The notes under the pieces: generated by a model | Databases searched by the model: none | What the model saw: the letters and a program-made list of their open reading frames with translations, nothing else | What the model was told of the DNA's origin: nothing | Assembly: GCF_020745735.1 (NCBI RefSeq) | Contig: NC_083409.1 | Location: 5,693,534 to 5,757,533 of the forward strand | Direction: 5' to 3' | DNA from: Hemiscyllium ocellatum | Taxonomy: Eukaryota | Length of the DNA stretch: 64,000 nt | Translations under genes and position numbers: made by a program | Part shown: piece by piece, positions 841 to 49,549 of the stretch | Layout of the letters: every line of letters starts with the position of its first letter | Position numbering within the stretch: the first letter of the stretch is position 1

Positions 841-950
841 ATTTTTTATCAAAAATCTACTTTATTCATAAAATATTTTGATGATCTGTACAATTGGCCA
901 TGCCATACATCCATAACATTCCATTTGTTTGCATACTGGGACAGAATAAT

Positions 951-986
<36 letters not shown>

Positions 987-12783: not shown

Positions 12784-13019
12784 ATACTAAATAAAAGCTG
12801 AAAAAGCTGCAGATGCTTCAAATGAGGAACACAAACAGAAATTGCAGGAAAAGCTCAGCAGGTCTGGCACCATCTGTGGAGAGAAAGCAGAGTTAACATT
12901 TTGGGACAGGTGAACCTTCTCAGAACTGTTCTGAAGAAGGGTCACTCGTCCTGAAAGGTTATCTCTGAATTCTTTCCTCTGATGCTGCCAGACCTGCTGA
13001 GGTATTCTGGTTTTGTGAA
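12784..13019. mobile_element. Palindromic Penelope-end-derived short element with TSD
   Basis: Perfect 16-bp inverted arms ctcagcaggtctggca (12854) and tgccagacctgctgag (ending 13001). GAGTCTG direct repeats at 12777-12783 and 13020-13026; empty site in unit C near 42205. Confidence 0.75.
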
Positions 13020-21039: not shown

Positions 21040-23720
21040 ACATAGATTAGTGATGGGTAATTTCTAACTAACAAATCAAATGCATTGACTAAAATAGTTG
21101 ATAGGACGTATAGTCTTAGCAACTTTCAGAAATACACAATAATTTTCACAAAACAGTCTGATGACCAAAGTTAAAACCCATGGGATTAAAGATGAATGTT
21201 TGACTTGGTTAGGAGACTGGTTTAGTGACAGACAACAAGGAAAAAAAGCATGATGAATGGTGTTCCACAAGGATTCTGTGATGAAGCCTTAACAGGATAC
21301 AAATGCTGCAGGGAGGATAGAAAAGGAGGCAAGAGAGGAGGTGGAGTGACATATTTGATAAGGGATAGCATTACAGCTGTACTAAGAAGGGTATTCCTGG
21401 AAATACATCCAGCAAAGTCATTTTGGTGGAACTGAGAAATAAGAAAGAGATTATGACCTTGTTGGGATTGACCCTCTGATAGTGAAAGGGTAATTGAGAA
21501 GCAAATTTGTAAGGAGATCTCAGCTATCTGTGAGAATAATAAGATGGATATGATATTAAGTTTCCAAACATAGACTGTGACTGTCATCATGTTAAGGGTT
21601 TAAATGGAGAGGAAGTTGTTAAGTGTGTACAAGAAAACATTTTGATTCAGTATGTGGATGTACCCAATAGAGAAGGTGCCAAACTTGACCTACTCTTGGG
21701 AAATAAGGCAGGGCAGGTGACTGAAGTGTCAGTGGGGGAGCACTTTGGGCCAGCAAGCATAATTCTATTAGATTTGAAGGAAAAGAATAAGACCAGATCT
21801 AAAATTTGAAGTTCTAAACTGCAGAAAGGCCAATTTTGACGGTACTAGGCAAGAACATTCGAAAACTGATTGGGTACAGATGTTCACAGGTAAAGGAACG
21901 ACTGGAAAATGGGAAGCCTTCAGAAATGAGATAACAAGAATACAGAGAAAGCATATTCCTTTTAGGGTGAAAGGAAAGGCTAGTAAGTATAGCAATCCTG
22001 GATGACTAAATATATTGAGTGTTTGATTAAGGAAAAGAAGGAAGCATATTTCAGGTATAGACAGGATAGATCGAGTGTATCACGAGAAGAGTATAAAGGC
22101 AGTAGGAGTATACTTAAGAGGGAAATCAGGAGGGCAAAAAGGGAACATGAGATAGCTTAAGAAGAATCCAAAGTGTTCTAACAAATATATCAAGGACAAA
22201 AATGTAACGGGGGAGAGAATAGGGCCCCATAAAAATCAGCAAGGCAGACTTTTTGTGGAGCCGCAGGAGATGGGGGAGAAACTAAATGAGTATTTTGCAT
22301 CAGTATTTACTGGAGAAAAGGATATGGAAAGTGTAGAATGTAGGAGAAAATGGTGACGTCTTGTGAAATGTCTATATCACAGAGAAGGAATTGCTGGATC
22401 ACTTGAAACGCACAAAGGTGAATAAATCCCCCGGACCTGATCTGGTGTACCTTAGAACTTTGTGGGAAGTTAAGGAAGTAATTGCTGGGCCTCTTGCTGA
22501 GATAGTTGTAACATCGATAGTCACAGGAGAGGTGCTGGAAGACTAGAGGCTGTCGAAAGTTTTGCCAGTTTTTAAGAAATCTGGCAAGGATAAGCCAGGG
22601 AACAATGCACCTGTGAGCCTGACGTCGGTGGTGGGCAAGTTGTTGGGGGAAATCCTGAGGGACAGGAGGTATATGTATTTCAAAAGGCAAGGACTGATTA
22701 GCGATAGTCAACACGGCATTGTGCGTGGGAAATCCTATCTCACAAAACTGATTGAGTTTTTTGAGGAAGTAACAAAGAGAATTGATGAGGCCAGAACGGT
22801 AGATGTGATCTATATGGACTTCAGTAAGGCATTCAACAAGGTTCCCCATGGGACACTGGTTGTAAAGATAGATTTCACATGGACAACTAGCCATTTGAAT
22901 ACAGAACTGGCTCAAAGATAAAAGACAGAGGGTGGTGGTGGAGGGATGCTTTTTAGACTGGAAGTCTCTGACCAGTGGAGTGTAACAAGGATCAGTGCTG
23001 GGTCCACTACTTTTTGTAATTTATATAAATGATTTGGATATGACCATAAGAGGTACAGTCAGTATGTTTGCAGACGACACCAAAATTGGCGGTGTGGTGG
23101 ATAACAAACCAGGGAACTATAGATCAGGTTACCTCAGATTACAACACGGTCTTGATCAAATGGGCCAATTGGATGAGAAGTGGCAGATGGAGTTTAATTC
23201 AGATGAGTGTGAGGTGCTGCATTTTGGGAAAGCAAATCTTAGCAGGACAAATACACTTAATGGTAAGGCCCTAGGGAATGTTGCTGAACAAAGAGACCTT
23301 GGAGTGAAGGTTCATAGCTCATTGAAAATGGAGTCGCAGGGAGAAAGGAAAGAGAAGAAGGTGTTTGGTATGCTTTCATTTATCGGTCAAAGTATTGAGT
23401 ACTGGGTTTGGTAGGTCATGTTGCAGCTATATAGAACATTGTTTAGGCTGCTGTTGAAATATTGCATGCAATTCCAATCTCCCTCCTTTCGGAAAGATAT
23501 TGTGAAACTTGAAAGGGTTCAGAAGAGATTTACAAGGATGTTGCTAGGGTTTGAAGATTTGCGCTATTGGGAGAGGCTTAGCAGGCTGAGGGTGTTATCT
23601 CTTGAGCATGTGAGCCTGAGAGGAGACCTTATAGAGGTTTACAAAATTATGAGGGGCATGGATAGGATAAATAGACAAAGTCATTTCCCTGGTGTGGGGA
23701 GTCCAGAACTGCATGAATTC
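21040..23720 (+). mobile_element. CR1/HER1 LINE, long fragment (EN C-terminus to RT C-terminus)
   Basis: ORF pieces 22562-22921 (PVSLTSVVGKLL, YMDFSKAFNKVPH), 22995-23414 (LGPLLFVIYINDL, FADDTKIGG) and 23418-23726. Confidence 0.92.
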
Positions 23721-24916: not shown

Positions 24917-27900
24917 GTAACTTTGTACACCCCCGTCCAACACCGGCATCTCCAAACCCAGATAGGGGCACATTCTTCCAAAAACTACCCTGTCTGGGCC
25001 CTGGAGACTTCAAAATGTTTCAGTGAAATCTCCTCCCAACTTCTAAATTCCAGAGAATCCTGACCCAATCCCCTCCCTCGATCATTAGACAATCCTCTCA
25101 AGCCGTCGCGTGAACTGTTGCTGGGTTTGATCATCTTAGTAAGCGTTTCAAGGAGGGAAGGAGAGAAATAGACACTTTCTACTTTGAATTGATACCACAC
25201 ATTGAAAAAAGCAACAACATATTCTGAGCAAGAATTTTTCACATATTCGGATGTCACTGATGTGGTGTCCTTATATTCTTTATTGTTGCCTTTTCTCTTG
25301 TTCATGTCATTTCGGAGAACAGGGTCAACTGAGAAGGAAATGAACAGCAGAGATTGTTTTCTCTGTTGATTAAATTCACCTTGTTTGCTCCTCTGATCAC
25401 GTGAAAGAAGGGGCAAGGCTCCGAAAGATTGTATTTTCTAATCAAACTGTTGGACTATAACCTGGTGTCGCAAGATTTTTGACCTTGTCCTCTGATCATA
25501 TTCAGGTTGTTCCCAAAAGCACTACATGTTCTTGCTTCTCCAGGTTTGCAGTTGGCGATGTTGACTATGGCTTTCACAATGGTCTCCATCAGAGAGGACC
25601 CACAAATGAGGGACAGAGACCAGAGATTGCTGGCCCCTTCTTGCTCCTCAGTCCGACATCCAAACGCAATGGAACCCCTGGAATCCCGAGCCATGTGCAT
25701 AATGCAAATATTGTGACTGAACCTTGCGATTGTTACCAACCTCACCAGGTCTCCACAGTCACTGAGATTATTTAAATACAGCCTTTGCCTATTAGGGACC
25801 CTGATTGATGGGATACACACTGAAATGGGTTACTAATACTGTATTGGGGAGATACAGATGCAAATTAACAAGTGGAAATCTGATGTTGTGGGTCTAACAG
25901 AGATCCGGGATTGGGGATTCCTGGGGATACAAGGTGTCCAGTAAAGTTAGGAAAGAGGGAAAACTGTGGTAAGTGTCAGGATTGATCTGGTGCAAGACAG
26001 TACTGACTAACCTTAGGCCCTGAAATATGATTGAGATGAAGGGTGAACTGTGGTGGGCTTTAACTCACTTTTACCAGAGTAAAACAGGGATTAACCATTT
26101 CACAAGAGAGTAAATAGATCTAACAAACCAGGTGCATGTGAAACACTTACCCAGTCCCTGAGAGAGGGAGGGACAAGAACAAGATATTCTCAGATAAAAA
26201 GGATGCTAAAAATGGTATCACCCCGAGAGTGAAGGGTGGGGTGGAGATAGTGACAGCGGCATCCCCCAGAGCGTGGTGAAAGTAGCACTAACACATTTAA
26301 AACTGTATAATCACAAGTGAGAATTCAAACAGACACCGAATCAGACATACGGTTTTGAAGATGCACCGTCCTCATCAAAACACGTTTGCAAAGCTCTTCA
26401 TAACACGTAAGGGGAGAGAGACATTGAAAACTGCATTATCACGAGCGAGAGATGGTGCATTTAAATTTTGGATCATGATGGTAAATGTTCCAAGCTGTAA
26501 ACAACACTGGTACATTGACGTCATTAACTTATTAAACAATATTAAAACCTCAGCCAAACATTTTCCTGCAGACAGTGTATTTAAAATATTAAGAGACTTT
26601 CCGCATTGTTGGTTTGATCAGTGACGTAACAAGGAAGCAGCAGCTGCCCCATGAACTCCAACAAAAGGATGTGAACAGGCTCTTCATACGGAGCTGGCTC
26701 CCGAGAATCCAGGTCAACAGCAGGAATCAAAGAACAAGAAACAGTACAGCACAGGAACTGGCCCTTCGGCCCTACAAGTCTGTGCTGACACATTTTGGCC
26801 TTCCTTTCTGAAACTGTCTTCACCTACAGGATTCATATCCCTCTATTGCCTTCCTATTCAAGCATTAGTACAGGTATTTCTTGAATAATTTTATTGTGTC
26901 TGCTTCCACCCTCTTCTCTGGCAGTGTGTTCCAGGTACTCAACTCCCTTTGTGTAAAATATTTACCTCATACATCTCTTTTAAATTCCCCCGCACCTTGA
27001 ACCTCTGTTCCTGAGTAAGTGACGCATGCATCCTGAAAAAAAAGCCTCATTTTTTCCAACCTAACTATGCCGTTCACAACTCTGTAATCTTCTATCACGA
27101 CACACCTCATTTTCGCGTATTCCAATGGAAACAAAGACGTTCTATCCAACCTTTCTTCAGAAGTACAATCCCCCACACCAGACAATACCCAGATAAGCAT
27201 TTTCTGCACCATCTTCAAAACATCCACATCCTTCTGGTAGTGTGCTGACCGGAACTGCATGCAATATTCCAAGTGTTGCATAACTAATGCTCGATAAAGC
27301 TACAGAATGACTTGTCAATCCTTATACTCAATGTCCCTTCCAATGAAGGCAAACATGCCATCAGCCTTTTTTTACTGCGTTACCTCCCTGTGCTGCCACT
27401 TTAAGTGATCCGTGAACGTGCACATCCAGATCCCTCTGCATCTCAATACTCCAAAGGATTTTGCCATTTACGGTATTATTCCCACCTGTACATTACTTTT
27501 CAAAATGCATAACCTCACATTAGTCTGGATTAAATTACATCTGCCATTTTTCTGTCCAAGCAGCCTTCTGATCTATATCCTGCGGTATCCTCTGACAAAC
27601 CTTCTCATTCTCCACAACTCTACCAATCTTAGTACCAACTGTAAACTTACTAATTAGACCAGATGTGCTCTCCTCCAATTCAGTTATGTAGAACACCACT
27701 GACCCCTGTGGAACATCATGTGTCTCCACCTTCTGTTCTGCAAACTATCCTACCATCACTGCCCTCTGTCTCCTGTGACTAAGCCAGTTCTGTATATAAT
27801 ACTGGGAACATTTTAGACAAGACACCTTGTTGCCAGCTCGTCACTGCAACTTGACCCAGTTCATTCAGAAAGAGAAAAAGGACAATGTGGAGATTATTGA

Positions 27901-30900
27901 ACAGACCTCTACACCTGGGCCTGAGGCAGGGGCCCAAGCTCCAACACACTGGCCTCACTTCACACAGTGCGGGGTCATGAACTCAGGCCATCAATTCCTC
28001 TCTAACCGGGACAAAGTGAGAGAGGAGGGGGAATGTCCAGGAGTCAATAAGGAATAAAGCAAGATGGAGTGAGTGTGTTGGCAAGTGTTCAATGGAGGAA
28101 ACATGCTTTGTGATACCAAACATGCTTTGTGATACCCAATACTGACATAGTCCACGCATGATAGAATGAAAAAAAAGCACAATCTGGAGACAATCAAAAG
28201 TCACACCAAAGTACTCCGTTTTGATATATCATAGCATGCAGATCATTTTCATTATGAGGCGATAAGTATACTGGTCCGAAAGTTGTTCTCTCTTTATATT
28301 GCTCTCTCTCCACGATTCTTCAGATGGAGCTGGTTAGAACCTCTTAAAGCCACAATTTATCTGTACTGTTCAGTAATGTGGGGTTGCCGATGGTGGACTG
28401 GGGGACACCTGATGAAGGAGCAGCGTTTCGGAAGCTTGTGATTTAACATATACCCGTTGGCTCGAAACTGCTTTTGTGTGACTTTTGACTTTGTATTTTT
28501 CGGGCAGAGAGAAACAGCTACCTTCTAGTAAGTATAAAGTAGTTGCACAGCAGCTGAGACTTATGGGTAATGCCTCTTCCCATTAGCCATGAATAAACCC
28601 ACATTCATTCCAGTCGATTCCAGCGGGAATGACCTGTCAGTTGCTTCCCAGATATTACATGGCTCACCACCGCCATCTCCAGGACAGTTCGGGAAGGGAA
28701 CCAAATAACATACACGTCAACGCCCGCCCCATCTCAGGAGAAATCAAAATAAATGGCATACAATTCAAATAATCAAACTGGTGAGGCTTGAATTCATCTC
28801 TTTGAAAGACTGGAGCCGTGGCCAGAAACAGGGCCATGACATGGGTAACCCTGATTTGTCAGACTGCAAGGTGGAGTTTCCTTTGGATTATCACTGGGAT
28901 CAGCAAAAAATGAATTATACTCAAAGATCTAACAAACAGCAATCAAAGCGTGCCCCAAACTGCAGAAAACAGCATTTGAGGCCTCGCATCCCCATCTCCA
29001 TCCTTGCTTGTTGCCCTTCCCCTCTGTCCTGCAGAGTGTGGTAGTGACCCATGAGTTTCTAGAAGTGCATCTGACAGAGGGCCAAGGTGAAGTCCTCGGC
29101 CTGAGCACAACTGCCTGACCTGCTGTGCTTTCCCAGTCCCACACTTTTTGACTCCGCGTACACTATCTCTCAGGAGAATGAGCTGTGACACAAGAGGAAA
29201 TGTGGGAGTGTTGGAAAGGCATCGGCAACCTGGTCAGCCTGCAGAGGGGCAGATACAGATTTGATGAGTGAGCTGATATCCTTTCGATCTGAGATGCAGA
29301 CACATGCTTTCAGAGCCACACAGATTACATTGTTACTGACCGTGGCTCCATGGACAATGCTCCTGCCTCATCGTCAAAATGGTCATCAGATTGAAAGCCA
29401 CCTCAGAATTGAGAGCACAGAATCCAGGCTGAGACCGCGATGCACTGTTGAAAGTTGCACAGTCTCTGACTCCGTCATTTGAGGCTCCACCAGCACCACA
29501 CCCCGACCATCCCCACCTCAGGGGGCTCGATAAGATCCCATTCTGAATAGAATCCATCAGTTATCCTGCTCACTATTCAACGAGTGCCAACAAAGGAGAT
29601 TTGTCTCGTCATTCGTTTCCTGTCTGCGGGACCTTACCATCTTGTCCGGGGACATGACTGCTCTGTGCTCACAGCTTTGAATATTCTGAGATGATTAAAG
29701 AAAAACTGCACCAACAAGAGGTCTGTCTTCATTATCATGTAAAAGAGAGAAGTTAATTTTCGCCGTTCAATTATGTTTTATCAAAAAAGCAGCAACATTT
29801 TATTTTATTTCATTTTAAGTTGTTTTGTATTATTTTATTTAAATTTTGTTTATCAAATTTTAGCCCGCTTGATTGGCACCATTTCCACACATATCCATTC
29901 CCTCCACACCAAAATTCAGTAACATTTATGTGTACTATCTAAGAGATTCATTGCGGAAATTCACCAAAGGTCCGAAGACAACACCTTCTAAACCCATGAT
30001 GACTTGAATAAAGAAGGAATAGGGCAAATAACCCCAGCAAGTTCCTCTACAGGCCATTCACCAGTTTGACTTGGAAACATCGACACGGGGTCAGAATCCT
30101 GGAACTCCCTTCTTCAGGATATTATGAGTCTAGCTACGGCACACAGCCTGCAGCGGTTGAAGAAGGCAGGTCAGCACCATCTTGTCCAGATCAATTAAAG
30201 ATGGACAGTAAAAACGCTGGTAAAAGTAAGAGTAGGCATGATGCGGGACCAGAAAGTGTGACTGTGATGTCTCAGTTATTCCTGGACATTGGAGTAATCA
30301 CATCTCAAATACTGTATTGTGTGTAGTTTTGGTCTCCTTATTGAAGGAAGAATATAAATGCATTAGAGGTGTTTCAGAGGAGTTTTTCCCGATTCATCCC
30401 TGTTTTGAGTGGGCTGTGAGATGAGGAAAGATTGGAAAGACTGGCCTTGTTCTCACTGGAGTTTGGAAGTCTGAGGGGTTTCCTGTCCCACTCTATTCTC
30501 CAAATCCCTATCTACCTCCCATGTGTGTTCTACCCTCCTGCCGCTTACTACACGTGGAAATGAACTGTGCAGTCCTGAGGCCTATAACTTCCTTCTGGAA
30601 CTAAGTTTCCAGGTATCTCCGGCACTCCCTGATGTATCTCTGCTTTTTTAATTCAGCCTTCATTCCAAACTCCCTGAGTGAGATTTCCTGTAGTTTTATA
30701 CATTCACTGCAGATGCATTTACTCTGAATCATTTCAACGCAATAAAGAAATGTTGCTTCTACTTCCAACTGAAAAATATCCATTCCTTCATTGGACCAGT
30801 AATTGTCTTCAGTCTCTGTTTTGACATTTCAGTACTTTGTCTTTATTAATCTTCCCGAATTGACATGTCCTGAAGCAGTCTATTTACGCATTCCCTCATA

Positions 30901-31347
30901 CTAAACAATTTCCAGATTCGTATTTTCTTGTTTACCATTTTGTTTCATTCAAACCAAGTGCATGTGCAGGCTCCCAGCAGCTGAAGTGACAGTTCCAAAT
31001 CATTTTGGAAAAGCAAAGGTGGACTCCTTCGCAGAGTTCGCCAAACTCCCACACTGACCAAACCTCCCAGCATTCCCCCCTATGCTGCACTGAGTGCGAT
31101 CTTCAGTATATGAGTTGCCCTGTATTTATATTGTTTTCTGATTTTTCTCACTCCATTCTGTTGTGCTGTTGTTCAGGATTTGGGTTAAGCTCACTTATTT
31201 CTCAATCGAAAGCTTCCTTCTTTCGGCCTGAAAGAGACTTTACATGTGCAACCAGCAAATGGGACTTCAATGTAGAAATCTGTTTTCTGGATTGATGGGC
31301 TCGATAGTTTGATTCAATGAAATAGCCTCGGCTAATCTCTTCAGGTT

Positions 31348-31657
31348 TCGACGTTTTAGGTGTAACCCTTCTTCAGGAAGGTGAGGGTAGGTGTCAGTAG
31401 AGTTGCAGATAAAGGAGTGGGTGGAAGCGAGGTGGTGAGGTGGAGATAGGTTGAGAAAGATAGGGAGTATGACTTGATTGGTCGATGGGAGAGAGGAATC
31501 CAGAATTATGCCTCCCTTTGACCAACCATGTACTACCCTCGACTTGTCTCCACCTATCCCCACCTAACCACCGTGCCCCGGCCACTCCATGTATCTGCAG
31601 CTCCCCCCAACACCCGACGCTCCCAACTTCCAGAGGAAGGGTTCCACCCAAAACGTC
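31348..31657. mobile_element. ~310-bp foldback element built from two Penelope-type ends
   Basis: Left arm gacgttttaggtgtaacccttcttcaggaag... is the reverse complement of the right arm ...cttccagaggaagggttccacccaaaacgtc. Paralog at 56815-57124; right half only at about 3550-3735. Confidence 0.8.
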
Positions 31658-31954
31658 TAATTCTCTATCTCCTGATGCTGCCAGGCTTGCTGTGTTCTCC
31701 CAGCCTCCTGTTTGTCAACCTTGGATTCCACCATTTGCAGTTTGTCTCTAATCTCTTCAGGGGCCACGATGAGTATGAGGAGGTTGGGTTTTGATGGAAG
31801 TACAACAGACTGAAGTCAAAAAAAAAACAAAGAAAGAAAGGCAAGAGGATCAAATTCGAGAGAGCAAATTGTGAGCAAAAAGTGCTTGTTCCCAGTTTAG
31901 CAATTGCAAAGGAGAGAGTGATAACATTGAATTGCTTCTGGTGTCATCCTCTGT

Positions 31955-32890
31955 GTTCAAAGTTTGTGAGAAGATTTGTAGCTCGCGTGCTCGTTGTTGT
32001 GGTTCTGTTCGCCGAGCTGGGAGTTTTGTTGCAAACGTTTCGTCCCCTTTCTAAGTGACATCTTCAGTGCTTGGGATCCTCCTGTGAAGCGCTTCTGTGC
32101 TGATTCCTCCGGCATTTATACTGGTTTGAATCTGCCGCTTCCGGTGTCAGTTGCTGTCCCCTGCAGTGGTCGGTATATAGGGTCTAGTTCAATGTGTCTG
32201 TTGATAGAATTTGTGGATGAGTGCCATGCCTCTAGAAATTTCCTGGCTGTTCTCTGTTTGGCCTGCCATATAATAGTGGTGTTGTCCCAATCGAATTCGT
32301 GTTGTTTGTCATCTGAGTGTATAGCTACTATGGATAGCTGGTCGTGTCGTTTTGTGGCTAGTTGGTGTTCATGGATGCGCGTTGTTACCTGTCTTCCTGT
32401 TTGTCCTATGTAGTGTTTTTTGCAGTCTTTGCATGGGATTTTGTACACTACGTTGGTTTTGCTCCTGCTGGGTATCGGGTCCTTTGTCCTGGTGAATTGT
32501 TGTCTGCGAGTGGCTGTTGGTTTTTGTGTGCTGTTATGAGTCCTAGTGGTTGCAGCAGTCTGGCTGTCAGTTCAGAAATGCTCCTGATGTATGGTAGCGT
32601 GGCCAATCCTTTAGGTTGTGGCATGTCCTCATTTCGTTGTCTTTCCCTAAGGCATCTGTTGATGAAATTACGCGGATATCCGTTTTTGGTGAATACTTTG
32701 TACAGGTGTTCTTCCTCTTTTTGTAGTTCAGGTGTGCTGCAGTGTGTTGTGGACCTTTTGAATAATGTCCTGATGCAACTTCGTTTGTGTGTGTTGGGGT
32801 GGTTGCTTTCATAGTTCAGGGCTTGGTCTGTGTGTACGGCTTTTCTGTATACCTTAGTGGTGAATTCTCCGTTCGGTGTTCTTTGTACCA
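31955..32890 (-). mobile_element. Penelope-like element, 5'-truncated (RT C-terminus + GIY-YIG), young
   Basis: ORFs 32448-32891 (TKVYRKAVHTDQALNYESNHPNTHKRSCIRTLFKR) and 32116-32448 (YKIPCKDCKKHYIGQTGRQVTTRIHEH), about one frameshift apart. Confidence 0.93.
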
Positions 32891-32979
32891 TAACAAAGGA
32901 GCTGGTTGTCCTTTTCTTCCTCTCTCGTGAATCGGATTCCTGTGAGTGTGGCGTTCATGATCCGGCGTGTGTTCTCTAT

Positions 32980-34820
32980 TTCTGTGTTTTGCTGGAAGAC
33001 TGGAGCGTGGCTAATGTCCTGCCAATATTTAGAAGTGGCTGCAAGGAATACCCAGGGAATTATAGACCAGTGAGTCTGATATCAGTGGGGAATAGGTTGT
33101 TGGAGCGGATTTTGAGAGACAAGGTATAAATGCATTGGAAATTCAAGGATTGATTAAGGATAGTCCACAAAGCGTTGTAAGTGGGAAATGATGTCTCACA
33201 AATTTGATTGAGTTTTTTTTTGAAGACATGACCAAGAAGATAGCAGAGAGCAGAATGGTAGACATTGCCTACATGGACACAAGCAAGAACTTTGACAAGT
33301 TACTGCATGGAAAACTGGTTAGTAAGTTAGATCAAGTTGGATCCAGGGAGGGCAAGCTAACTAATACAAAATTGGCTTAATGGGTGGAGACAGACAGTGG
33401 TGGTAGAAGCTTATTGTTCAGGATGGAAGCCTGTGACCAGCAGTATGGCAAAAGGATTGGTTCTGGGTTCATCATTGTTCATCATTTATAGAAACAAATT
33501 GAATGAAAATAAACGAAGCACGGTTTGTGAGTTTGCAGATGACACTAATATTAGTGGTTTCATGGACAGTGAAGAAGGCTATTTGAGAGTACATTTACAT
33601 TATACATTGAGATAATAGTGAGGAGTTGCATTTGGTACAAAAACTAGGCCAGGGCTAACACAGTTAATTGTGAGGCCATGGGGAGTGTTGTCAAACAGAG
33701 TGACCAAGGGGTGGAGGCACATAGAGGATTGAAACTGGTGTCTCATGTAGTCAGGGTGGTGAAGAAAGCATTTGGTACAATTGCTTCTATCGGTCAGCGT
33801 ATTACGTGTGGGAGATGTTACGACTCTCCAAGGTATTCATCAGGCTACATTCCCAGTCATCCTGCTATTGGAAGGATGTCATTAAACTGGCAAGGGTTTA
33901 AAAAGGATGTCACCGAGACTGGAGGGTTTGAGTTTTAAGGAGAGGCTGGTTAGGCCTCGGCTATTTTCGTTAGAAGGTCAGAGGCTGTTGGGCGACATTT
34001 CAGAGGTTTATAAAAACATAATGGACATAGATAAGATGACTAGCTCAGATTTATTCCCCAGGTAAGGGAGTCCAAAGCTAAACATCAGAGGTTTAGAGCA
34101 AGAGGGGAAAGATTCAAAAGGGACCTGAGGTGCATCTCTTTCACATAGAGGGAGGTGCTTGTATTAAACGAGTTGCCAGAGAAAGTCGTAGACGTGAGTA
34201 TGATAACAAAATTTAAAAGACATTTGAACAGGTATCTGGATAGGAATGGTATGGGGAAAATTAGCTAAATGCAATCAAATGGGATTACGGGAATAGATAA
34301 GGGAAATAATTCATAAAGGATGTGAATATTTTGTAGATTGGGTAAACAAAGAAGCCATGGAAGGTTCAGGGATGAGGAAAGTCAGTTATGAACAAATTTT
34401 GGAGAAGTTTAGACTGTCTAACTTGGAGAAGTGAAGGGTGAGTGGAAATTTGTTTGAGCAATTCAAAATCAGAATGTGCCTGGACAGAGTAAATAGGGGA
34501 AAAAAATGTTCCCACTCATGAAAGAATTGAGAAGGAGAGGGCACAGATTTAAAGTAATTAGGGAAAGAATCAAAAGTGAGATGAAGAAAAAATTATCAGC
34601 CAGTGAATGGTTAAGGTGTGGAATGCACTGCCTGAGATTGCAGTGGAGGCAGCTTCAATTAAAACATTCCGAAGGGAATGAGGCAGTTATTTGAAAAGGA
34701 ACAATGTGCAGGGTGACAGGGAGAAAGCAGGAGAATGACACTCAGTGAATTGTTCATTCAGAGAGCCGGTCCAGACAGGATGGTTGGAATAACCTCCTTG
34801 TGCACTGTAACAATTCAGTG
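32980..34820 (+). mobile_element. CR1/HER1 fragments in the residual unit B J-C intron
   Basis: YPGNYRPVSLISV, WKPVTSS; about 32980-34230 shares derived deletions with about 9950-11155. Confidence 0.8.
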
Positions 34821-34875
34821 GTTGTGTGATTGAGCAGAGCTAAAGCTGGGGGTGGTGGGAGCTCGGTGTCTCACT

Positions 34876-34903
34876 GTGCTGCTGCTGCTGTTGCTGCTGC
34901 TAC
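34876..34903. repeat. Imperfect (CTG)n tract 3' of J
   Basis: gctgctgctgctgttgctgctgct. Confidence 0.8.
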
Positions 34904-35236
34904 TGAAGTCAGTGAGATCAGAGACTCGGACAGGGAGCCAGAGCTCACATCAAACTCTGCCCGTGTCCGTCACACTGAGACTGGCTGGAGGCGACTCACT
35001 GATTTCACTCCATGCTGCAGAAATGGGACCACAAGCTGCAAATGGGCAGAGCTCCTCCACCCACTTATATCTTGCTGCTTATCCGGGACAATGGAACTAA
35101 AGAAATACAGCAGGGCACCCTGTGAGACATAGTGCTCCTCAATCAACTATTTCATTCACTGCAGCTCCCCTCTAACACCTTCAACAATTCAGCATTTGTG
35201 TTTTAGGAGGTTTCAGTACTGAAAGGGTTTACTTAC

Positions 35237-35271
35237 TCAGTCTGAGCTTGGTTCCTTTACCGAAAGTAAGC
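35237..35271 (-). other. IGKJ: J-kappa gene segment (LTFGKGTKLRL), apparently intact
   Basis: G CTT ACT TTC GGT AAA GGA ACC AAG CTC AGA CTG A|GTAAGT: FGxGT motif and a canonical donor at 35236-35231. Confidence 0.96.
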
Positions 35272-35310
35272 CACGGTGAGAGCTCCCTGTGTAGAGCCTG
35301 TACAAAAACC
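35272..35310 (+). other. 23-bp-spacer RSS of J
   Basis: CACGGTG + agagctccctgtgtagagcctgt (23 nt) + ACAAAAACC (consensus nonamer). Confidence 0.95.
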
Positions 35311-35814
35311 TCTGCTCTCTGCTTCCCTCCATAACTCTCACCCTCTCCCTGTCTCTCACTTACTCTCATATTCTCTTTGTCATTCATATCTTTCTGTTTT
35401 TCTCATTCTGTTTTTCTCTCTCACTCTGTCTGTCTGTCTGTCTCTCTCTCTCTCACACACTCCCCGCCCCCCCAACACCTTTCTCACTCTCTTTCTTTAT
35501 TTCTATCTGGATTATGTCCAGCTGGCCTCGGGAGGTATGTGGAATTTATTTTTCGATGTTAAATCTTGCAGCTGCTCTCCCCATGTGGCCATGGAGTGTA
35601 AGAGGGAAACTTTAGGCCTTCAGTGAGTGGTGGACAGCACAGGGACTGGAGTGTGTAATGGACAGTGACCATCCCAGCATGGGGTAATTTGTTCAGTTTC
35701 ATTTATATCTAACTGTGGACGTGTCAATGCAGGAGGTGGATGTGTGTGTTCTCTATTTAGAATGATATATAATTGTGGTATGTGTCAGTACAGGCGGTGG
35801 GACTGTGTGCATTG

Positions 35815-35842
35815 AGATTTTGTACAGCTGTGTATCATTGTG
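35815..35842 (-). other. 12-bp-spacer recombination signal sequence 3' of V
   Basis: CACAATG + atacacagctgt (12 nt) + ACAAAATCT, directly after the YYC-QQSYSYPL end; kappa-type configuration. Confidence 0.92.
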
Positions 35843-36134
35843 TAGAGGGTAGCTGTAACTTTGCTGACAGTAATAATCAGCGACATCCTCATTCCGAACG
35901 TTGCTGATTGTCAGGGTGAAGTGTGTGCTGGACATTTGTGTCCCGGTGAATCTGTTGGAGACTCCTGTAAATCGAGTTGCTGCATTGTAGATCAGGAGAG
36001 AGGTTTTTTGCCCTTCTTGCTGCTGAAACCATTCGACATTACCACTGGCACTCTGACTGGATTTACAGGTGATGGTCGCAGTCCCACCTACAGCACCGGG
36101 GGAGACTGAGTCATGGTGATGTCCCCACTGATAC
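35843..36134 (-). pseudogene. IGKV: V-kappa exon pseudogene, unrearranged
   Basis: Acceptor ccccttAG. Reads ISGDITMTQSPPVL*VGL, then a frameshift, then TITCKSSQSASGNVEWFQQQEGQKTSLLIYNAATRFTGVSNRFTGTQMSSTHFTLTISNVRNEDVADYYCQQSYSYPL. TAG at 36088-36090 and an out-of-frame FR1 deletion. Confidence 0.95.
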
Positions 36135-36319
36135 CTAAGGGGTCAGAGAGAAACACAATGAATTCAGAACTGTCACAGAAAGAGCCTGTCAAATGAGAGA
36201 TTGTTGGAGACACTGAGCATTCCTCTGGTTTCAGCATTTTCCCTTCAATAAAAAGTCAGTGGAATTGGAGTGAAATGGAGAGCAGCTAAAGATTCAGGTG
36301 GAAGGAGAGAGATTTGTCC

Positions 36320-36368
36320 CTGCAATACAGAATGCCAGTGGCCAGATCAGCTGTATGTGTGAAATCAT
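36320..36368 (-). pseudogene. IGKV: V-kappa leader exon (MISHIQLIWPLAFCIA-G) with a dead splice donor
   Basis: ATG at 36368-36366; 49 nt of signal-peptide coding. The phase-1 donor reads GCAG|GGACAA instead of GT. Confidence 0.88.
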
Positions 36369-36427
36369 GATGTGTGCTCCTGTCCCTGGGCCTGGTTCCT
36401 GATAAACTCCCCCCTCACTGTGCTCAG

Positions 36428-36482
36428 CTTTGTAAAGCTGCAGTCTGTGAGAGTCTGACTGGGTATTCCTCAATATGTAAAT
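36428..36482 (-). promoter_or_regulatory. V promoter remnant: octamer variant and TATA-like box
   Basis: Minus-strand ATTTACAT at 36475-36482 (one mismatch to ATTTGCAT, light-chain orientation), about 107 bp upstream of the ATG. TTTACAAA lies about 40 bp closer to the ATG. Confidence 0.6.
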
Positions 36483-36521
36483 GGCATCAGGCAGAGAGAG
36501 CCACGTTAGTCCCTCACACTT

Positions 36522-36522
<1 letters not shown>

Positions 36523-36592
<70 letters not shown>

Positions 36593-36596
36593 TCCA
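36523..36596. repeat. (CT)n/(GA)n microsatellite upstream of the V promoter
   Basis: Near-perfect CT run about 40 bp upstream of the octamer variant. Confidence 0.95.
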
Positions 36597-37869
36597 GAGA
36601 GTCATTGATGTGAACTGCAGTGTATGAGGCCATTTGGCCCATTGTGTCTGTGTTAGTAAACATAGATCTGATGACACTAATCCCATCCTCCAGGTCATGG
36701 CCCATTACCCTGGAGGCTACAGCAACACAAGGAAATATCTAAACACTGCAACAATGTCACGAGAGTTTGTGACTCAGGCCGTGAGTTCCAGACTCCCACC
36801 ACCCTCTGGGTGAAAACATTTCTCCTCAACTCTCTTCTCACTCTCCAACTCGACTGGGTCTAGACTCATTCAAGTTTAGAAGAGTGAGAGGGAATCTGAT
36901 TGAAATGTATAAAATTCTAACAGGGCAGGGCAGAGAGGAGGTTTCCCTTAGTTGGCGAGTCTGGAACCAGGGGACCCAGTCTCAGGAGGATACAGGGTAG
37001 ACCATTTAGGACTGAGATGAGGAAACATTTCTTCACTCAGAGGGTGGTCAACCTGTGGATTTTCCACCACTGAATATATTCAAGAAAAAGAGAGAGATGA
37101 TTGTTTTGCATTTTAACAGCATGAAAGGAATGGGGAGAAAGCAGGAATATGGCTTTGAGAGAAAGGGTCAGCCATGATAATACTGAATGACAGAGCCGAC
37201 TCAAAGGGCCGAATGGCCTGCTGCAACTCTGAGTTTCTGTGTGTCCATGTCTGTGCTACCTTCAATCTCTGCCCCTGGTTATGGAGTCCTTTACTCATGT
37301 AAAACGTGCCTTCCTACCCACCCTATCACTGCCCCAAATAATCTTCTACCCCTGTATCAGGTCCCTTCTCAGCCTTCACTGCTCCAAGGAAAAACAACCC
37401 CAACCATTCTATTCTTATCTCAAAGCTCACAATGACGCAGCATCCTTGGAAATCTGCCCATACCCTCTAAAGTACAATGACATCCTTGCCAGAATATGGT
37501 GACCAGGACCTGCCCTCTTCTCTCTCTCTCTCTTTTTCTCTATCTGCCTCTCTACCTCCCTTTCTGACTCATACTTCACATGTCTTTCTCTCTACCTCTA
37601 TCTCTCTCTCCCCCACTGTTAATCTCTTTCATAATCACTTTCTCTATCTCAAAGTTACTCCCTCCAACCCACTCACAGTTCCTCACACCGTCTCATAATC
37701 TCTGTTTCTGCATCTTTATCTGTCTCCGTCACTCACTCAATCTCTCGCTATAATTGAACGAATTCAAATGTTATCTGCCCCTCTCTATTCCTCCCTCTGT
37801 TTCTCTGCCACCCTCTCTGCATCCCAATCTACAGTCTCCCTCCCTCCCTCTCTGGCATTCTGTCTCTAA

Positions 37870-41700: not shown

Positions 41701-43082
41701 AACTGAATGAGGGAACAATTCTGTGCAGGTTTCACAACTTGGAGACAGAGATGCTGCTGGATTGTGTTTTTGATCTCCGAGGGCAGGCGTGTGTGTTTGT
41801 GAGAGAATGACTGACATTTCTTCCATTACTGTGCTGTTTCTGCAAAACAAATCCCAGAACCAGCCTCCATTGCTGTCAGGTTTCAGGGAGTGCAGACAGT
41901 TCACAGTTTTCTCCCGTCTCAGTAACAAACGTCCGGCTGCTCCGAGCTCCTTCTTTCACTTCCTCTCTTGGTGAAGTTTTAACCTTGGGATCTGACAGAC
42001 TTTGCAGTTATTTTCGCCACTGGGTCTTTCTGCTGTGGTCAGAATCTCTAATAATAAGTTTCCAATCAGTGGCAATCACAGCAGCTAAGGGCAGTCAGGA
42101 CTGAGGAGCCAGGCTCACTGTGAAACACGTTGGGAAGATCAAAACCATCCTCTTCAGATTCTTGTATAAACTTCATCCCTCTCCCTGATCACTGTCTGCT
42201 GCTAAATCAGACTCATAACATACTTGGTCACATCTATGTAAATGATCTGAGCTCCAATGCCAATGAAAATCTCAGCCACGTCTGGGACTACAAACATGAC
42301 CATTCCAATGCTGTACTTGCACTCATCACAGTCACAACCCTCCATAATCTTGAGCTCATCCCAAGTTCTGCTGCCCATATCCCAACTTGCACCAAGTCCC
42401 ATTCCCCCAACCTCCTGCACCTCATGTTTACATTGGCTCCTGGTCCAGAAACACTTCAATTTTCACATTCTCATCCTCGTTCTCAAATCCCTCCCTGTCC
42501 TCTACCTTCCTTATCTCTGTGACCTCCTCCTAGCCGCCTCACTGAGTGTGGTTAACACTCTTGGGTATAGGGCTCTCTAATCCTTTATGCACATCATTGA
42601 GAAACATTGTGTATATCTCAGCACAGATCCCTGGGGACGCCACTATTCTCATCTTGCTCATTAGAGGACACACACATTATCCGTCCTCTCTGACTCCTAT
42701 CTCCAAACTAATTCCTGACATAAGACAAATACTTTTCACTAATTGGTTTGATGGGAGAAAGCAGAGGTTAATCGTGGAAAGATGCTTGTCAGACTGGACG
42801 CCTGTGTCTAGTAGAGTGCCTGAGGGCTAGGTGCTGGGCCCATTACTGTTTGTCATGTGTATCAATAATTTGGGCGAGAATCTGTAAGGCATGATTAATA
42901 AGTTTGCAGAAGACATTACAAAAAGTGGTATCATGGAAATTATCAGATATTGTGGCAGGACCTTGATCAGCTGGGGAAGTGGGAAGAGAAATAAAAATTA
43001 AATTTATGTAGATTAATGTGTGGTCTTGAATTTTAGAATATTAAATCAAGTTCGGGCTTTCATTGAGTAAGGCTTAAGGAGT

Positions 43083-43775
43083 AGAACATAGAACATAGAA
43101 TAATACAGCACAGAACAGGCCCTTCGGCCCACGATGTTGTGCCGAACATCTATCCCAGATTAAACACCCATCCATGTACCTATCCAATTGCCGCTTAAAG
43201 GTCGCCAATGATTCTGACTCTACTACTCCCACGGGCAGCGCATTCCATGTCCCCACCACTCTATACCTTCCACCCTTCACCTTAAATTTATGTCCCCTTG
43301 TAAGACTCTGTTGTACCCGGGGAAAAAGTTTCTGACTGTCTACTCTATCTATTCCTCTGATCATCTTATAAACCTCTATCAAGTCACCCCTCATCCTTCG
43401 TCGTTCCAACGAGAAAAGGCCGAGAACTCTCAACCTATCCTCGTACGACCTATTCTCCATTCTAGGCAACATCCTGGTAAATCTTCTCTGCACCCTCTCC
43501 AAAGCTTCCACATCTTTCCGAAAGTGAGGCGACCAGAACTGCACACAGTACTCCAAATGTGGCCTAAACAAAGTCCTGTACAGCTGCAACATCACTTCAC
43601 GACTCTTGAATTCAATCCCTCTGCTAATGAACGCTAATACACCATAAGCCTTCTTACAAGCTCTATCCACCTGAGTGGCAACTTTCAAAGATCTATGTAC
43701 ATAGACCCCAAGATCCCTCTGTTCCTCCACCTGACTAAGAACCCTACCGTTAACCCTGTATTCCGTTGTTGAAAC
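43083..43775 (-). mobile_element. Young 5'-truncated CR1/HER1 inserted antisense into an older CR1 (about 42740-44510, +)
   Basis: Stop-free ORF 43074-43730 (QRDLGVYVHRSLK...HLEYCVQFWSPH...ERVQRRFTRML) and an (AGAACAT)n tail at 43083-43100. Confidence 0.92.
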
Positions 43776-44519
43776 CCTGAGTGTTGTGGAACAGTGGGAT
43801 CTTGTAGTTCAGGTGCACTGTTCCCTGCAAGTTGAGTTACAGTTAGTCAGGGAAGGGAAGAAAGCTTTTGATGTTCTGGCCATTATCAGTCGGGGCACTG
43901 GGTACGGGCGTTGAGAAGTTATGTTGCAGTTGTACAGGACATTGGTGAGGCCGAACCTGGACTATTATGTTCAGTTTTGGTCACATTGTTATAAGAAGGA
44001 TATTATTCAACTGGAAAAAGTGCAGAAGAAATTTACAAGGATGTTGCCAAGTTTCAATGTCTGAGTATTTGGGAGAGGTTGGAGAAGCTAGGACATTTTT
44101 CTTAGAGTGTAGGAGGCTGAAGGGTAATCCTTTAAAAGTGTACAAGACCATGAGAGACAGGGATAAGGTGAATGCACCCAGCCTTTTTCCCAGGGTTGGT
44201 GAATCGAGAGCGATAGGGTAACAGTTTAAGGTCAGAGGGGAAAGAGAAAAAGGGAACCTGAGTGGCTACATTTTTACACAGAGGATGGTACACATATGGA
44301 GTGAGCTGCTAGTCGAAGTGATTGAGGCGGGTGCATTAGCAACATTTAAAAGGCATTTGGACAAATACATAGTTAGGTAAACTTTTGAAGAATATGGGCC
44401 AAGTGAAGGGAAATAGGGTTGGTGTGGAGGGACATTTTGGTCAGCACGGACAATTTTGGGCCAAAGGGCCTGTCTCTGTGCTGTAGGACTCGATGACTCT
44501 ATGACTCTATAACTTCATA

Positions 44520-47500
44520 TGTTTCTATTTTTATGAAAAGTCTCTCAAACATAGAAGCGAAGGAACTAGGAGCAGGAGGAGGCCATTTAGCACTTCGAGT
44601 GGGCTCTGCCATTCAATAAGACAATGGCTTATCATCCAACTTAGTCCTCTTTTCCCACTTTCTCCCCCTAACCTTTAGTCCCTTTTGTCCTAAGGACGAT
44701 ACCTATCTCCTTCTTGAAACTATTTAATTTTTTGGTCTCAACTGCTTTCTGTGACAGGATATTCCACTAGCTTCCCAGTCTCTGTCTAAGGAAATGTCTC
44801 CTCATCTCAGTCTGAAATAGCCTTTCCCATTTCTTTGAACTGTAATTCCTGGTTCTGGATTCCCCAGTCATCAGGACCATCCTTCCTGCGTTTTTCCGGT
44901 CTTGCCCTGTTAGGACTTTACAGATTTCAAAGTGATTCCTCCCAATCTTCTTATCTCTAGTGATTATAGTTCTTACCAATCCAGTTTCTCATCAGAGCTA
45001 AGTGCTGTCCTCCCAGGAATCAGTCTGGTAAACCTTCGCTGCCCTCCCTCCACATCCAGAACATCCTTCCTCAGATAAAGAGACCAAAACTGCACACAAT
45101 AGAATCATAAAATCACAGAATACAGAAGAGGCCCTTCAGCCCATTAACTATGTACCAGCCAAACTACACTAAACCTCCACCAGTCTAACTTTCCAACATG
45201 AGGCCCATAGATTGAATGTTATGACATTTCAACTGCTCATCCAAGTACTTTTTAAATTTTGTGAGGCTTCCCAATTCAACTACCCTCCCAGGCTGTGCAT
45301 TCCAGACCCACACCACCCTCTGGATAAAAAAAATCTTGAAACCTCTTATCTTTCTCATTGCATGTGAGCCAACTTGTTATTGACCCTCCCACGAAGGAGA
45401 ACAGCTGCTTCCTTTCCACGCTATCCATTCCCCTCATAACCTTATACACCTCGATCAGGTCCCCGCTCCACCTTCTCATCTCTGAAGAAAACAACCCGAG
45501 CTGATCCAATTTCTCTTCATCACTGAAAGGTTCCATCCCACACAACATCCTAGTGATGCCCCTCGGCACTTCATCCAGTGCAATCACATCCTTCCTACAG
45601 TGTGGTCCAGTACTCCAGCTGTGGCCAAACAAATGTTCTGCTTAACTGCAAGATATCCTCCTGCTTTTATAACCAATACCTGAAACGATAAAGGAAAATG
45701 TCCCATATGCCTTCATAACTGCTCTGTTAACCTGCCTTGCCACATTCAGGAATCAGCGGACAAGTACACAGAGATCGCTCTGTTCATCTGAGTTTCCTCA
45801 GTTCAAAGATCAAAGAACAAAGAAAATTGCAGCATAGCAACAGGGCCTTCGGCCCTACAAGCCTCCGCCAATCCAGATCCTCTATCTAAGCCTGAGACCT
45901 ATTTCCCAAGTATCTGTATCCCTTTGCTCCACGCGCATTTATGTATCTGTCTAGGTACATCTTAATTGAGGTTGTCATGCCTATCTATATCATCTCCACT
46001 GGCAACATATTCCAGGAATACACCACCTTCTGCGTAATCAACTTTCCATGCATATCTCCCTTAAACTTTCCCCCCCTCACCTTGAACACATGACCTCTGG
46101 TAATTGAGTCCGCATCCTGGGGAAAAGCTTCTTGCTATCCATCATGTCCACACCTCTCACGGTTTTGTCGACCTCAATCTGCCCCCATCTTCATATTTCC
46201 AATGAAAATAATCCTAATCTACTCAACCTCTCTTTATAACTAATACCCTCCATATCTCAATGCTGATGAACCTCCTTTGCACACTCTCCCAAGTACGCAC
46301 AATCTTCTGATAAAGAGGTGACCGGAATTCTACGCACTTTTCTAAATGTGGCGTAACCAAAGTCCGATACAATTTTAACATGACTTCCAACTCTTTTACT
46401 CAGTACCCTGTACGATGAAGGAAAATATGTTGTCTACCTTTTTAACCACTCTATTGCCTTGCATTGCCACCTTCAGGCCAAATGGACCTGAACACCCAGA
46501 CCCCTCTGTACATAATTTTCCCCCAGGGCTTTTCATTTACCATATAGTTCACTCTGGTATTGCATTTTCCAAAATTCATCACCGCACATTTGATCAGATT
46601 GAACTCCATCTGTCTATTTCTCCGCCCAATTCTCCAATATTCTGCTGTATTCTCTGACAAACCCCTGCACTACCGGCTATTTCACCAATCTTAGTAACAT
46701 CTGCAAACTTAATACTCACTCAACCTACGCTTTCCTCCAAATCATTTGTGCATGTCACAAATAAGAGTGATCCCAGCACAGATCCCTGTGGAACACAACT
46801 GGTCACAGTTCTCCATTTTGAGAAACTCCCTTCCACTATTACTCTCTGTCTCCTGTTGCCCAGCCTGTTCTCTATCCATGCAGCTAGAACACCCTGGTCC
46901 CCAAGTGACTTCATTTTTTTTTCGTCGGGCTACCATGGGGAACCTGATCAAACATCTTACTGAATTCCATGTATATGACATCTACAGCCCTCCCCCATCA
47001 ATCAATTTTGTCATTTCTTCAAAGAATTTTATTGCATTGGTCAGACATGACATTCCCTGCATAAAATCATGCTGCCTATCACTGATAAGTCTAGTTTTTT
47101 CCAAATGTAAGGAGATCCTATCCCTCAGTATCTTCTCCAGCAGCTCCCTTACCACTGACGTCAGGTTCACTGGTCTATAATTACCTGGATTATCCTGACT
47201 GCACTTCTTAAACAAGGGAACAACATAAGAAATTCTCCAGTTGTCTGGGACCTCACCCGTGTTCAAGTTTGCGACAACGCCCTCCCAGCTACTTCCTCTC
47301 TTATTCCCCTCAGATAACTGGGATAGCTCCCATCTGGACCTGGGGACTTGTCCACCTTAATGCCTTTTTGAACACCCAAAACTTCTTTCTTCCCTGTGTT
47401 GACTTGATCCAGAATAATCAAACATCAATCCCTAACCTCAACATTCATCATTTCCCTCTCCTGGGTGAATACCAACACAAAGTACTCATTAAGAATCTCA

Positions 47501-48830
47501 CCCATTTTCTCTGACTCCATGCCTAACTTTCCTCCTTTGATCTTGAGTGGGCCAATCCTTTCTCTCGTCACCACCTTGCTCCTTATATACGAATAAAAGC
47601 CTTTGGGATTGTCTTTAACCCTGTTTGGTAATTATATTTCATGACCTCTTATAGTCCCTTTGATTTTCCATTTCAGATTAGTCCTACTTTCCTGATAGTT
47701 TTCCAAAGACTCATCTGTTGTCAACCATTTAGACCTTATGTATGCATTCTATTTCTACTTGGCCAGTCTCACAGTTTCACATGTTATCGAGGGTTCCCTA
47801 ATCTTGCCATTTCAATCCCTCAGTTTCACAGGGACATGTCTGTCCTGCACTCTAATCAATCTCTTTTATTTAAACGCCTCCTACATATCAAATGTGGATT
47901 TACCTTCAGACTGCGGCTCCCAATCTACATTCCCTATCTCCTGCCGAATTTTACGAGAGTTGGCCTTCCCCCAGTTTAGCCCTCTTCATTTCGGACCACT
48001 CTCGCCTTTGCCCATGAGCATTCTAAAAGCTATGAAATTATGATCAGAGTTCCCAAAATAATCCCCGACTGAGATTTCAACCACCTGGCTGGTCTCATTC
48101 CAATACAAGTATCCAGTATGACCCGTTCCTGAGCTGGACTATTTACATATGTCTCCATAAAACTCTTCTGGATGCTCCTTACAAATTCTGCTCCATCTAA
48201 ACATTTTGCTCCCAGTGAGGCCCAGTCAATGTTGACAAAGGTAAAATCTCACATCACCACCACCCTGTTGCTCCTACATCTTTCCATAATCTGGTTCCAA
48301 ATTTGTACCTCTATCCCGCGCTCGCTGTTGGGAGGCCTGTAGTACAGCCCCAACATTGTTATTGCATACTTCCTATTTCTGAGCTCTGCCTATATTGTCT
48401 CACGGCTCGAGACCTCCATCGTGCCCTCCTTCAGTACACCTCCTTCAGCTGTGATATCTTCTCTGACCAGTAATGCAACTCCTCCATCCCTTTTACCTCC
48501 CTCTCTTTATCCGCCTGATGCATTTATAACCTGGGATGTTTAGTTGCCAATCTTGCCCTTCCCTCAACCAAGTCTCAGTCATAGTAATAACATCATACTC
48601 CCATATACTAATCCAAGTCCTCAGTTCCTCTGCCTTACCTACTACACTTCTTGCATTAAAACAAATGCACCTCAGACCACCTGTTTCTCTGCATTCCTCA
48701 TCTGCTCCCTGCCTATTCTTCCTCTTAATCACACTGACTTCATTATCTAGTTCCTTACAGGCTTTAATTACTACCTTCTTCCTGCCCACTAATCTCCTCA
48801 TTTTGTTCCCATTCGCCTGACAGATGTGAA
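44520..48830 (-). mobile_element. Stack of CR1/HER1 fragments, including a long EN-RT copy (about 46400-48830)
   Basis: CICFNARSVVGKAEEL...ETWLREGQDWQLNIPGY; PGNYRPVNLTSVV; [12 protein letters not shown]. Confidence 0.88.
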
Positions 48831-49549
48831 AGACAGCATTAGGATTTGTTAGATTCATCAAAGGCAAAGTGCCAATTTCTAACTAGAGTGATAATCATGA
48901 TGCTAGCCAACTATTACCATCCCAAATGCTGGTATTATTGGACAACACAGATCTCAGACTGCAATGCAAACAGAAACAGCTGAAGAAATGCAATTGGTCT
49001 GCAGCATCTTTGGGGCATAAGCACACAATGCTGATGATTTAGATTTAGTAATTAGTCCTCCTTACAGAATCCAAATGAAGATAAAATAAAACATACTGAC
49101 AGAAAACACAAATGCAAAATATGGAGCTCTCAGCCTCATGGAAGCTCCTCACCGACACCAGCTGCTGCTCAAGCTCCGAAACCTGGAGCTCCAACTGCTG
49201 TCACTGACTCATGGTATTCCAGGAGCTGGAAAGCATCCTGAAGTTCCCACATGGAACAAGATAAGCCTCTTTCCATTCCCTGATTACCTCTTGGCAAAGT
49301 TCTGATGACAAACAGCTCCAGCAGGGCTCACCATCCAGTGCTTTCAGTGTTCTTGGGTTTTGCAGAGTCTCTTAAAACAACATCAAAATTTGACCATTCA
49401 CCCCATCAGGTCTGCTGTGCCATTTGGTCATGGCTGATGTGTTTCTCAAGACCATTGTCTTGCCTTCTTCCCATTATGTTTGATTGCCAGTCAAAGACCT
49501 ATCAAAACCTGCCCTAAATACACTCAATGACTTCACCATCAGAGCAACG

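Follow-up and report, generated by a model that had tools for sequence, protein, structure and literature searches.

In sharks the antibody light chains come from dozens of small V-J-C clusters, which arise by duplication and are lost by decay. In the stretch of Hemiscyllium ocellatum DNA that we analysed as a whole (64,000 nt, called the window below), one cluster shows a V gene and a J segment without a C exon, and a fragment of a Penelope-like retroelement is found where the missing part of the cluster would be expected. This raises the question of how the C exon was lost and whether the element itself had a part in the loss. Using self-BLAST we found three copies of one unit in the window, named A, B and, for the inverted copy, C-unit:

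1-13354, unit A, with its light-chain gene on the minus strand (self-comparison)
25906-31955, minus strand, unit B, a copy of the DNA 3' of a light-chain C exon (self-BLAST and three-way alignment)
64000 down to 41871, the inverted C-unit, with its light-chain gene on the plus strand (self-comparison)

For this part of unit B the homologous stretches are A 1-3991 and C-unit 64000-56514, with the homology stopping at 31955. According to the three-way alignment the 3' flanks of A, B and C-unit share 82.1-82.7% identity in every pair, and the site patterns of the three-unit alignment (AB 229, AC 235, BC 246) are those of a star tree. Thus, rooting gives no help to a sister status of A and B. Ten ORFs from the flanks, including 3968-4294 which spans the breakpoint in A, matched zero Pfam families.

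The array shows several other irregularities. About 2.3 kb of 3' flank is common to B 29217-31582 and C-unit 60778-56900 and is missing in A at 3550; this gap in A is another large deletion within the array. In the J-C intron, A 8312-11175 and C-unit 50213-45595 are non-homologous (2.9 kb vs 4.6 kb) with homology on either side, and each of the two stretches carries a different CR1-type copy in identical orientation. Homology between A and C-unit is over by 13354, well short of a Penelope-type RT at 16661-17804. For the read evidence we used Logan contigs from three samples of the species and one relative. At 31379-31685 about 282-306 bp are missing from contigs of all four runs. The stretch left out is very highly repeated, its depth being about 10^5, and in Rfam both of its strands match a miRNA family weakly and in a palindromic manner (E 7e-4 and 8e-3, the scores falling far short of the gathering score). 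Probably it is a SINE- or MITE-like insertion which close paralogs lack, or which is polymorphic.

The coding parts of the light-chain genes are distributed unevenly over the three units, with the sole V and the sole J of the window both lying in B (tblastn, motif and RSS scans):

35815-36368, minus strand, V gene of B (Pfam V-set, E 1.4e-15)
36368-36329, minus strand, leader exon of this V gene
36134-35843, minus strand, V exon of this V gene
35842-35815, minus strand, 12-spacer RSS of this V gene
35271-35237, minus strand, J segment of B, reading LTFGKGTKLRL, with a GTAAGT donor at 35236-35231
35278-35272 (heptamer) and 35310-35302 (nonamer), minus strand, 23-spacer RSS of the J segment (35237-35310 together with the J)
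6134-6472, minus strand, C exon of A, a pseudogene in which, compared with the C-unit exon, 10 bp are inserted close to the 5' end and FYPDE has a TAT>TAG change
54451-54779, plus strand, C exon of the C-unit, open (Pfam C1-set, E 1.3e-17)

The V exon of B opens in the leader frame as GDITMTQSPP and then runs into a TAG (36090-36088) at codon 12 in FR1, and the remainder, from SVSPGAVGGTATITC, is open in a different frame (minus strand; region 36088-36123). FR1 therefore carries a small frame-shifting indel. The C domain of the C-unit is nearest to kappa constant regions among solved structures. Neither A nor the C-unit has a V or a J in the window according to tblastn, YYC/FGxG motif scans and RSS scans, and the 12.6 kb upstream of the C-unit C exon that are homologous to A (41871-54451) contain no V, J or RSS. 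No C exon is present between the J of B and its 3' flank, as tblastn with the C domain matches A 6433-6140 and C-unit 54489-54773 only. B is a V-J without a C exon, and the orphaned V-J described in the first-pass annotation is therefore real: A and B are colinear to the left and to the right of the gap, and B holds the sole V and J but has no C exon of its own. Taken together the window is without any complete light-chain gene, the V of B and the C exon of A being broken and the C-unit being without V-J, and for this reason the locus has no bearing on antibody function.

Contigs from runs X1 and X21 fuse the J (from 35270) straight to the V (to 35851) plus 3 bases, at about twice the single-copy depth, and the relative (run X5) has a comparable J-V joint with 28 added bases. 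When placed on the sequence of B, the V-J joint of X1 and X21 is out of frame. The contigs would seem to come from a paralog at another place in the genome, with at least 90% similarity to B and with V and J joined in the germline, and they agree with the germline-joined NS4 genes of the nurse shark (PMC2193156).

In order to see what B has lost we compared it with A, in which one long interval has no counterpart in B:

3992-9961, minus strand, interval of A without a counterpart in B, 5.97 kb in A coordinates (self-BLAST and three-way alignment)

Of this interval, 2.1 kb are 3' flank including the 3' UTR; next comes the C exon, and about 3.5 kb of C-proximal J-C intron make up the rest. As proposed earlier, the C exon of A (6472-6134, minus strand) lies inside the missing interval, and the order and orientation of B relative to A are kept on both sides of the gap (self-BLAST). 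In B the following features take the place of the missing DNA:

31956-32988, minus strand, 5'-truncated Penelope-like element of 1,033 bp (translation, protein search, tblastn and read contigs)
32903-32451, minus strand, RT C-terminal/linker piece of the element, an open stretch of 151 residues (translation)
32161-32454, minus strand, GIY-YIG endonuclease domain of the element, reading ...VVYKIPCKDCKKHYIGQTGR..., in another frame than the RT piece

The Pfam match for GIY-YIG on the fragment is weak (E 0.008, below the cut-off). The 147-aa RT piece matches 4098 proteins in an exhaustive protein search with a best E of 6e-66, and in the long homologs RVT_1 lies just upstream of the matched stretch (an 832-aa protein has RVT_1 and a 720-aa protein RVT_1 and GIY-YIG). 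The homolog P0008 has RVT_1 and GIY-YIG, and the fragment aligns across both. Using tblastn the fragment could be placed at residues ~529-807 of the 832-aa homolog, with the RT piece at ~529-688, and thus represents the C-terminal third of a Penelope-like ORF. While the protein matches and this placement agree with the 5'-truncated Penelope fragment of the first-pass annotation, the "~90 bp of filler" (32890-32980) that it described next to the fragment is actually Penelope sequence, whose frame was moved by an 8-bp indel at 32891-32898. This stretch reads ...NTEIENTRRIMNATLTGIRFTREEEKDNQL right after the RT YVDD box; other copies of the family read LPFLDVMVQRT, and B is 8 bp shorter at the indel and matches them on either side. 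The truncation point at 32988 adjoins the YVDD box, and the RYVDDTF of the homolog would fall just beyond it, where B has antisense CR1. The reading frame is shifted near 32451-32523 and again at 32891-32898, stops are also present, and this copy of the element is dead.

The family to which the element belongs is very abundant. Its summed depth in the Logan contigs is about 10^6, compared to tens for single-copy parts, corresponding to about 10^4-10^5 times single copy, and along the fragment the depth drops towards the 5' end, a gradient to be expected if most copies of the family are 5'-truncated. Comparators for this family were not found elsewhere in the window. The second Penelope-type RT, at 16661-17804 (plus strand), was considered as a comparator and rejected, since its protein is about 26% identical to homologs of the fragment in B, which places it in another family. 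We detected no hammerhead at E<=1 in 25000-37800 (Rfam gave only sub-threshold RNA noise) no pseudo-LTR in the fragment and no repeat partner in the window; as the fragment is without the 5' part in which such motifs and structures lie, little can be read from their absence.

At the left end of the element, A, B and C-unit align through ...TGTCATCCTCTGTG, and past this point A and C-unit stay together and B departs. The final common base is B 31955 = A 3991, which refines the break formerly placed at B 31954 and A ~3993, and the element begins with the next base without any filler. In run X19 the match of 98 contigs is lost exactly before 31956, from where they run into dissimilar AT-rich flanks. 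As all these contigs end at the same base with unlike flanks, 31956 is the natural 3' terminus of the Penelope family, so that on the left we see a primary integration junction and not a random break. The element therefore did integrate at this point of the flank (31955/31956). A target-site duplication was not found, the flanks at 31955 and 32990 being unrelated, and this absence is expected if the target DNA was lost.

On the right side the element reaches to 32988 and a CR1-type sequence starts at 32990, leaving at most one base (32989) ambiguous between them. Three CR1-type fragments have to be distinguished here:

32990-34335, plus strand, CR1a, a CR1-type LINE RT fragment with its 5' side cut by the Penelope junction and its ORF end preserved (near 34266)
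9860-11165, plus strand, A copy of CR1a, reaching further 5' than the B copy, with its 3' side cut near 11165
34340-34830, plus strand, second CR1-type 3' fragment, unrelated to CR1a (sequence reading; weak matches to other CR1 copies)

The last of these sits between CR1a and the J-proximal intron. In A and B, CR1a is a plus-strand RT fragment with many stops, frame 2 of B reads LEDWSVANVLPIFRSGCKEYPGNYRPVSL..., and the aligned copy at 22562-23414 of the window matches RVT_1 in Pfam (E 2e-5 and 2e-4). Judged by translation and alignment, the rejoined segment reads as a LINE-type RT fragment of the CR1/L2 clade. B 32990-34239 matches A 9962-11161 (self-BLAST), and in an alignment of six copies this pair is 80.3% identical over 1185 columns, compared to 54-64% for the other CR1 pairs in the window. 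A 41-bp deletion (B ~33601/A ~10531) and an 18-bp deletion (B ~33848/A ~10761) are present in A and B only and absent from the four other copies. That B rejoins A in a segment with common derived deletions had been noticed before and could be confirmed, with the rejoining at B 32990/A 9962 and the 41-bp deletion at the very string quoted at that time. With 80.3% identity next to 82.1-82.7% in the flanks, the CR1 pieces have diverged as much as the flanks have, and this is good, though not conclusive, evidence for a CR1 in the ancestral J-C intron. We thus consider it highly probable, from the aligned copies, that the ancestral intron would already have contained this CR1. The CR1 at the colinear position of the C-unit (47238-45988) was tested as the same insertion and rejected, as it is 54-55% identical and both deletions are absent.

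The homology of A and B to the right of the gap is restricted to this 1.2-kb CR1 piece, and from A 11165/B 34240 onward the two units are unrelated; a comparison of B 34240-36800 with A and C-unit gave nothing beyond generic matches of CR1 and simple repeats. The two CR1a copies also end differently, A extending further 5' (~9860) and B further 3', and they have no element-to-flank junction in common. The right junction itself is bridged by 133-bp contigs from X1 (study P1) and X21 (study P8), with 54 and 78 bases on either side.

This restricted homology would also be expected if the CR1 pieces of A and B were independent insertions of one subfamily that already carried both deletions. B from 32990 and A from 9962 would then not be equivalent in position, and B would combine a 3' flank with a V-J unrelated to it, a chimera produced by another rearrangement such as ectopic recombination between two Penelope copies. 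In addition to the right-hand homology being transposable element only, without unique DNA, the lack of a close copy in the C-unit fits such a chimera, as do the many contigs at least 90% like the B CR1 in the reads, which point to a sizeable related family. Nevertheless we regard it as improbable: the identity of the two pieces equals that of the flanks (80.3% vs 82.1%) with all other pairs far lower, both copies share orientation and side relative to the C flank, just two such copies exist in 64 kb, and the 41-bp deletion breaks the RT frame, which argues against an active, transposing master copy already carrying it. Still less credible, and in our opinion very unlikely, is an assembly artefact in which the highly repeated Penelope sequence joined two unrelated regions. 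The enormous depth of the element, inside which contigs break, makes such a mis-join conceivable, and of the 31-mers across the left junction the two that were sampled occur together only in runs from what may be the source sample of the assembly, while in other species one of them occurs, a match without clear meaning. However, contigs from two samples and two studies bridge the right junction, long reads easily span a 1-kb repeat, and both sides are colinear with unit A, unlike in a random mis-join. We therefore have strong confidence in the combined statement that the element-bridged deletion is real and that CR1a is common to A and B by descent.

For the origin of this structure a single event can be envisaged. 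The ancestral unit, on the minus strand, would have consisted of V and J, then an intron in which an old CR1-type LINE lay, and after it the C exon and 3' flank. The Penelope-like element may have started target-primed reverse transcription from a plus-strand nick after B 31955, and the cDNA would have been copied for about 1 kb only, giving the 5' truncation, before its far end was joined to a second break about 6 kb off, inside the intronic CR1. The DNA between the breaks, with the C exon, the 3' UTR and the C-proximal intron, would have been lost, and the leftover V-J, unable to make a light chain, would later have decayed up to the stop codon in FR1. An intact 3' end and frequent 5' truncation are hallmarks of target-primed insertion, and the natural 3' terminus, the 5'-truncated end, the absence of a target-site duplication, the at most one stray base and the colinear flanks together make up the structure expected of a target-primed insertion joined to a distant break. 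The event is old, the copy being already frameshifted. Comparators for the state before the insertion are the paralogs A and C-unit, which are about 82% identical, and the read tables for the window (Logan contigs, four samples) contain no empty-site contigs.

The same structure would also result from two steps, namely a normal Penelope insertion of any length at the A-equivalent position 3991/3992, with a target-site duplication, and a later, unrelated end-joining deletion of more than 6 kb, which took away the 5' part of the element together with everything from the adjoining flank through the C exon to the CR1 in the intron. Its ends would be identical to those observed, with the natural 3' terminus on the left, an arbitrary break in the RT on the right and the target-site duplication gone, and other homology breaks or large indels do exist at this locus (about 2.3 kb at A 3550, A/C-unit 8312-11175 and A/B 11165). 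On the other hand, two independent events would be required where one suffices, and a 1-kb 5'-truncated copy is the usual insertion product of the Penelope family. By our own rough estimate the rates of both routes are comparable, assuming about 0.1 family insertions per 10 kb, of which about 1% come with a large deletion, and setting this against an equally frequent insertion that is later hit by a multi-kb deletion, one of whose ends lies within the element. The evidence fits one event and insertion followed by deletion equally well, and a single sequence cannot separate them. We would put insertion and deletion in one event at slightly below an even chance, and the two-step course is possible, if somewhat less probable. 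From the original proposal that the insertion, or repair with this element, deleted the C exon, the colinear loss and the integration of the element at the left junction can be kept; the causal part is no more than plausible, as a deletion from within the element to within the CR1 after the insertion leaves the same structure. It had also been taken as established that Penelope-like elements are linked to target-site deletions, but the precedent in the literature is for L1, Alu and SVA, which makes this premise an analogy and not a documented property.

The locus presents one mode of light-chain cluster death at base resolution, with the C exon lost and a retroelement in the gap. Events of this kind are known, and pseudogenes are a familiar feature of this gene family, to which the locus adds a new example. 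For annotation this means that the V-J of B and the C exons of A and C-unit are not to be counted as working light-chain genes. The GIY-YIG-based integration of Penelope-like elements is poorly understood, and if the insertion did make the deletion, the locus would be a clear natural example of a large target deletion by such an element and would extend the insertion-associated deletions of the L1/SVA type to Penelope-like elements. A wider reading, in which the Penelope-like element removed the C exon in one deletion of about 6 kb and its abundant GIY-YIG family recurrently kills light-chain clusters, is at present tentative, and we see it as somewhat doubtful; since the genome has tens of thousands of copies of this family, a certain number of coincidences must be expected.

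Among the known systems, unit B belongs with the kappa-type (NS4/type III-like) light-chain clusters of sharks, as a copy that is dead. It resembles nurse shark NS4 and horned shark type III (kappa) in its split V and J with 12- and 23-spacer RSS and its split leader. The leader intron of 194 bp and the V-J distance of about 570 bp are close to the 186 bp and about 500 bp of NS4, and, as in NS4, the final base of the J ahead of the donor is A (PMC2193156). NS4/type III comprises about 50 genes per genome including pseudogenes, with about 10% being germline-joined (PMC2193156). The difference lies in the absent C exon; in the published pseudogenes it is the V gene that carries point mutations or is out of frame.

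The inserted element shares with the EN+ Penelope-like elements (Penelope/Poseidon/Neptune type) the single ORF with RT followed by a C-terminal GIY-YIG, the strong 5' truncation and the very high copy number. Unlike these it retains only the last third of the ORF and shows no pseudo-LTR, tandem or inverted partner, hammerhead or target-site duplication. In the literature examined, Penelope-like elements are described with 5' truncation, internal deletions and target-site duplications that vary or are missing, and large target deletions are not among the features described there. Insertion-associated deletions of 14 bp to tens of kb have been documented for the non-LTR retrotransposons L1, Alu and SVA, and the locus agrees with them in that an element with an intact 3' and a truncated 5' end exactly fills a multi-kb gap, that a target-site duplication is missing and that the loss of about 6 kb falls within their size range. 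In contrast to these, the element is Penelope-like with a GIY-YIG nuclease and not an APE-type LINE, and the link between insertion and deletion is inferred. With NCLI, the endonuclease-independent L1 insertion at double-strand breaks, it has in common the absent target-site duplication, the linked deletion and a site unlike the AT-rich flanks that dominate the other copies of the family. However, NCLI copies are 3'-truncated and without the element terminus, so that endonuclease-independent capture at a break is less likely here, and the complete 3' terminus points to ordinary priming at a nick.
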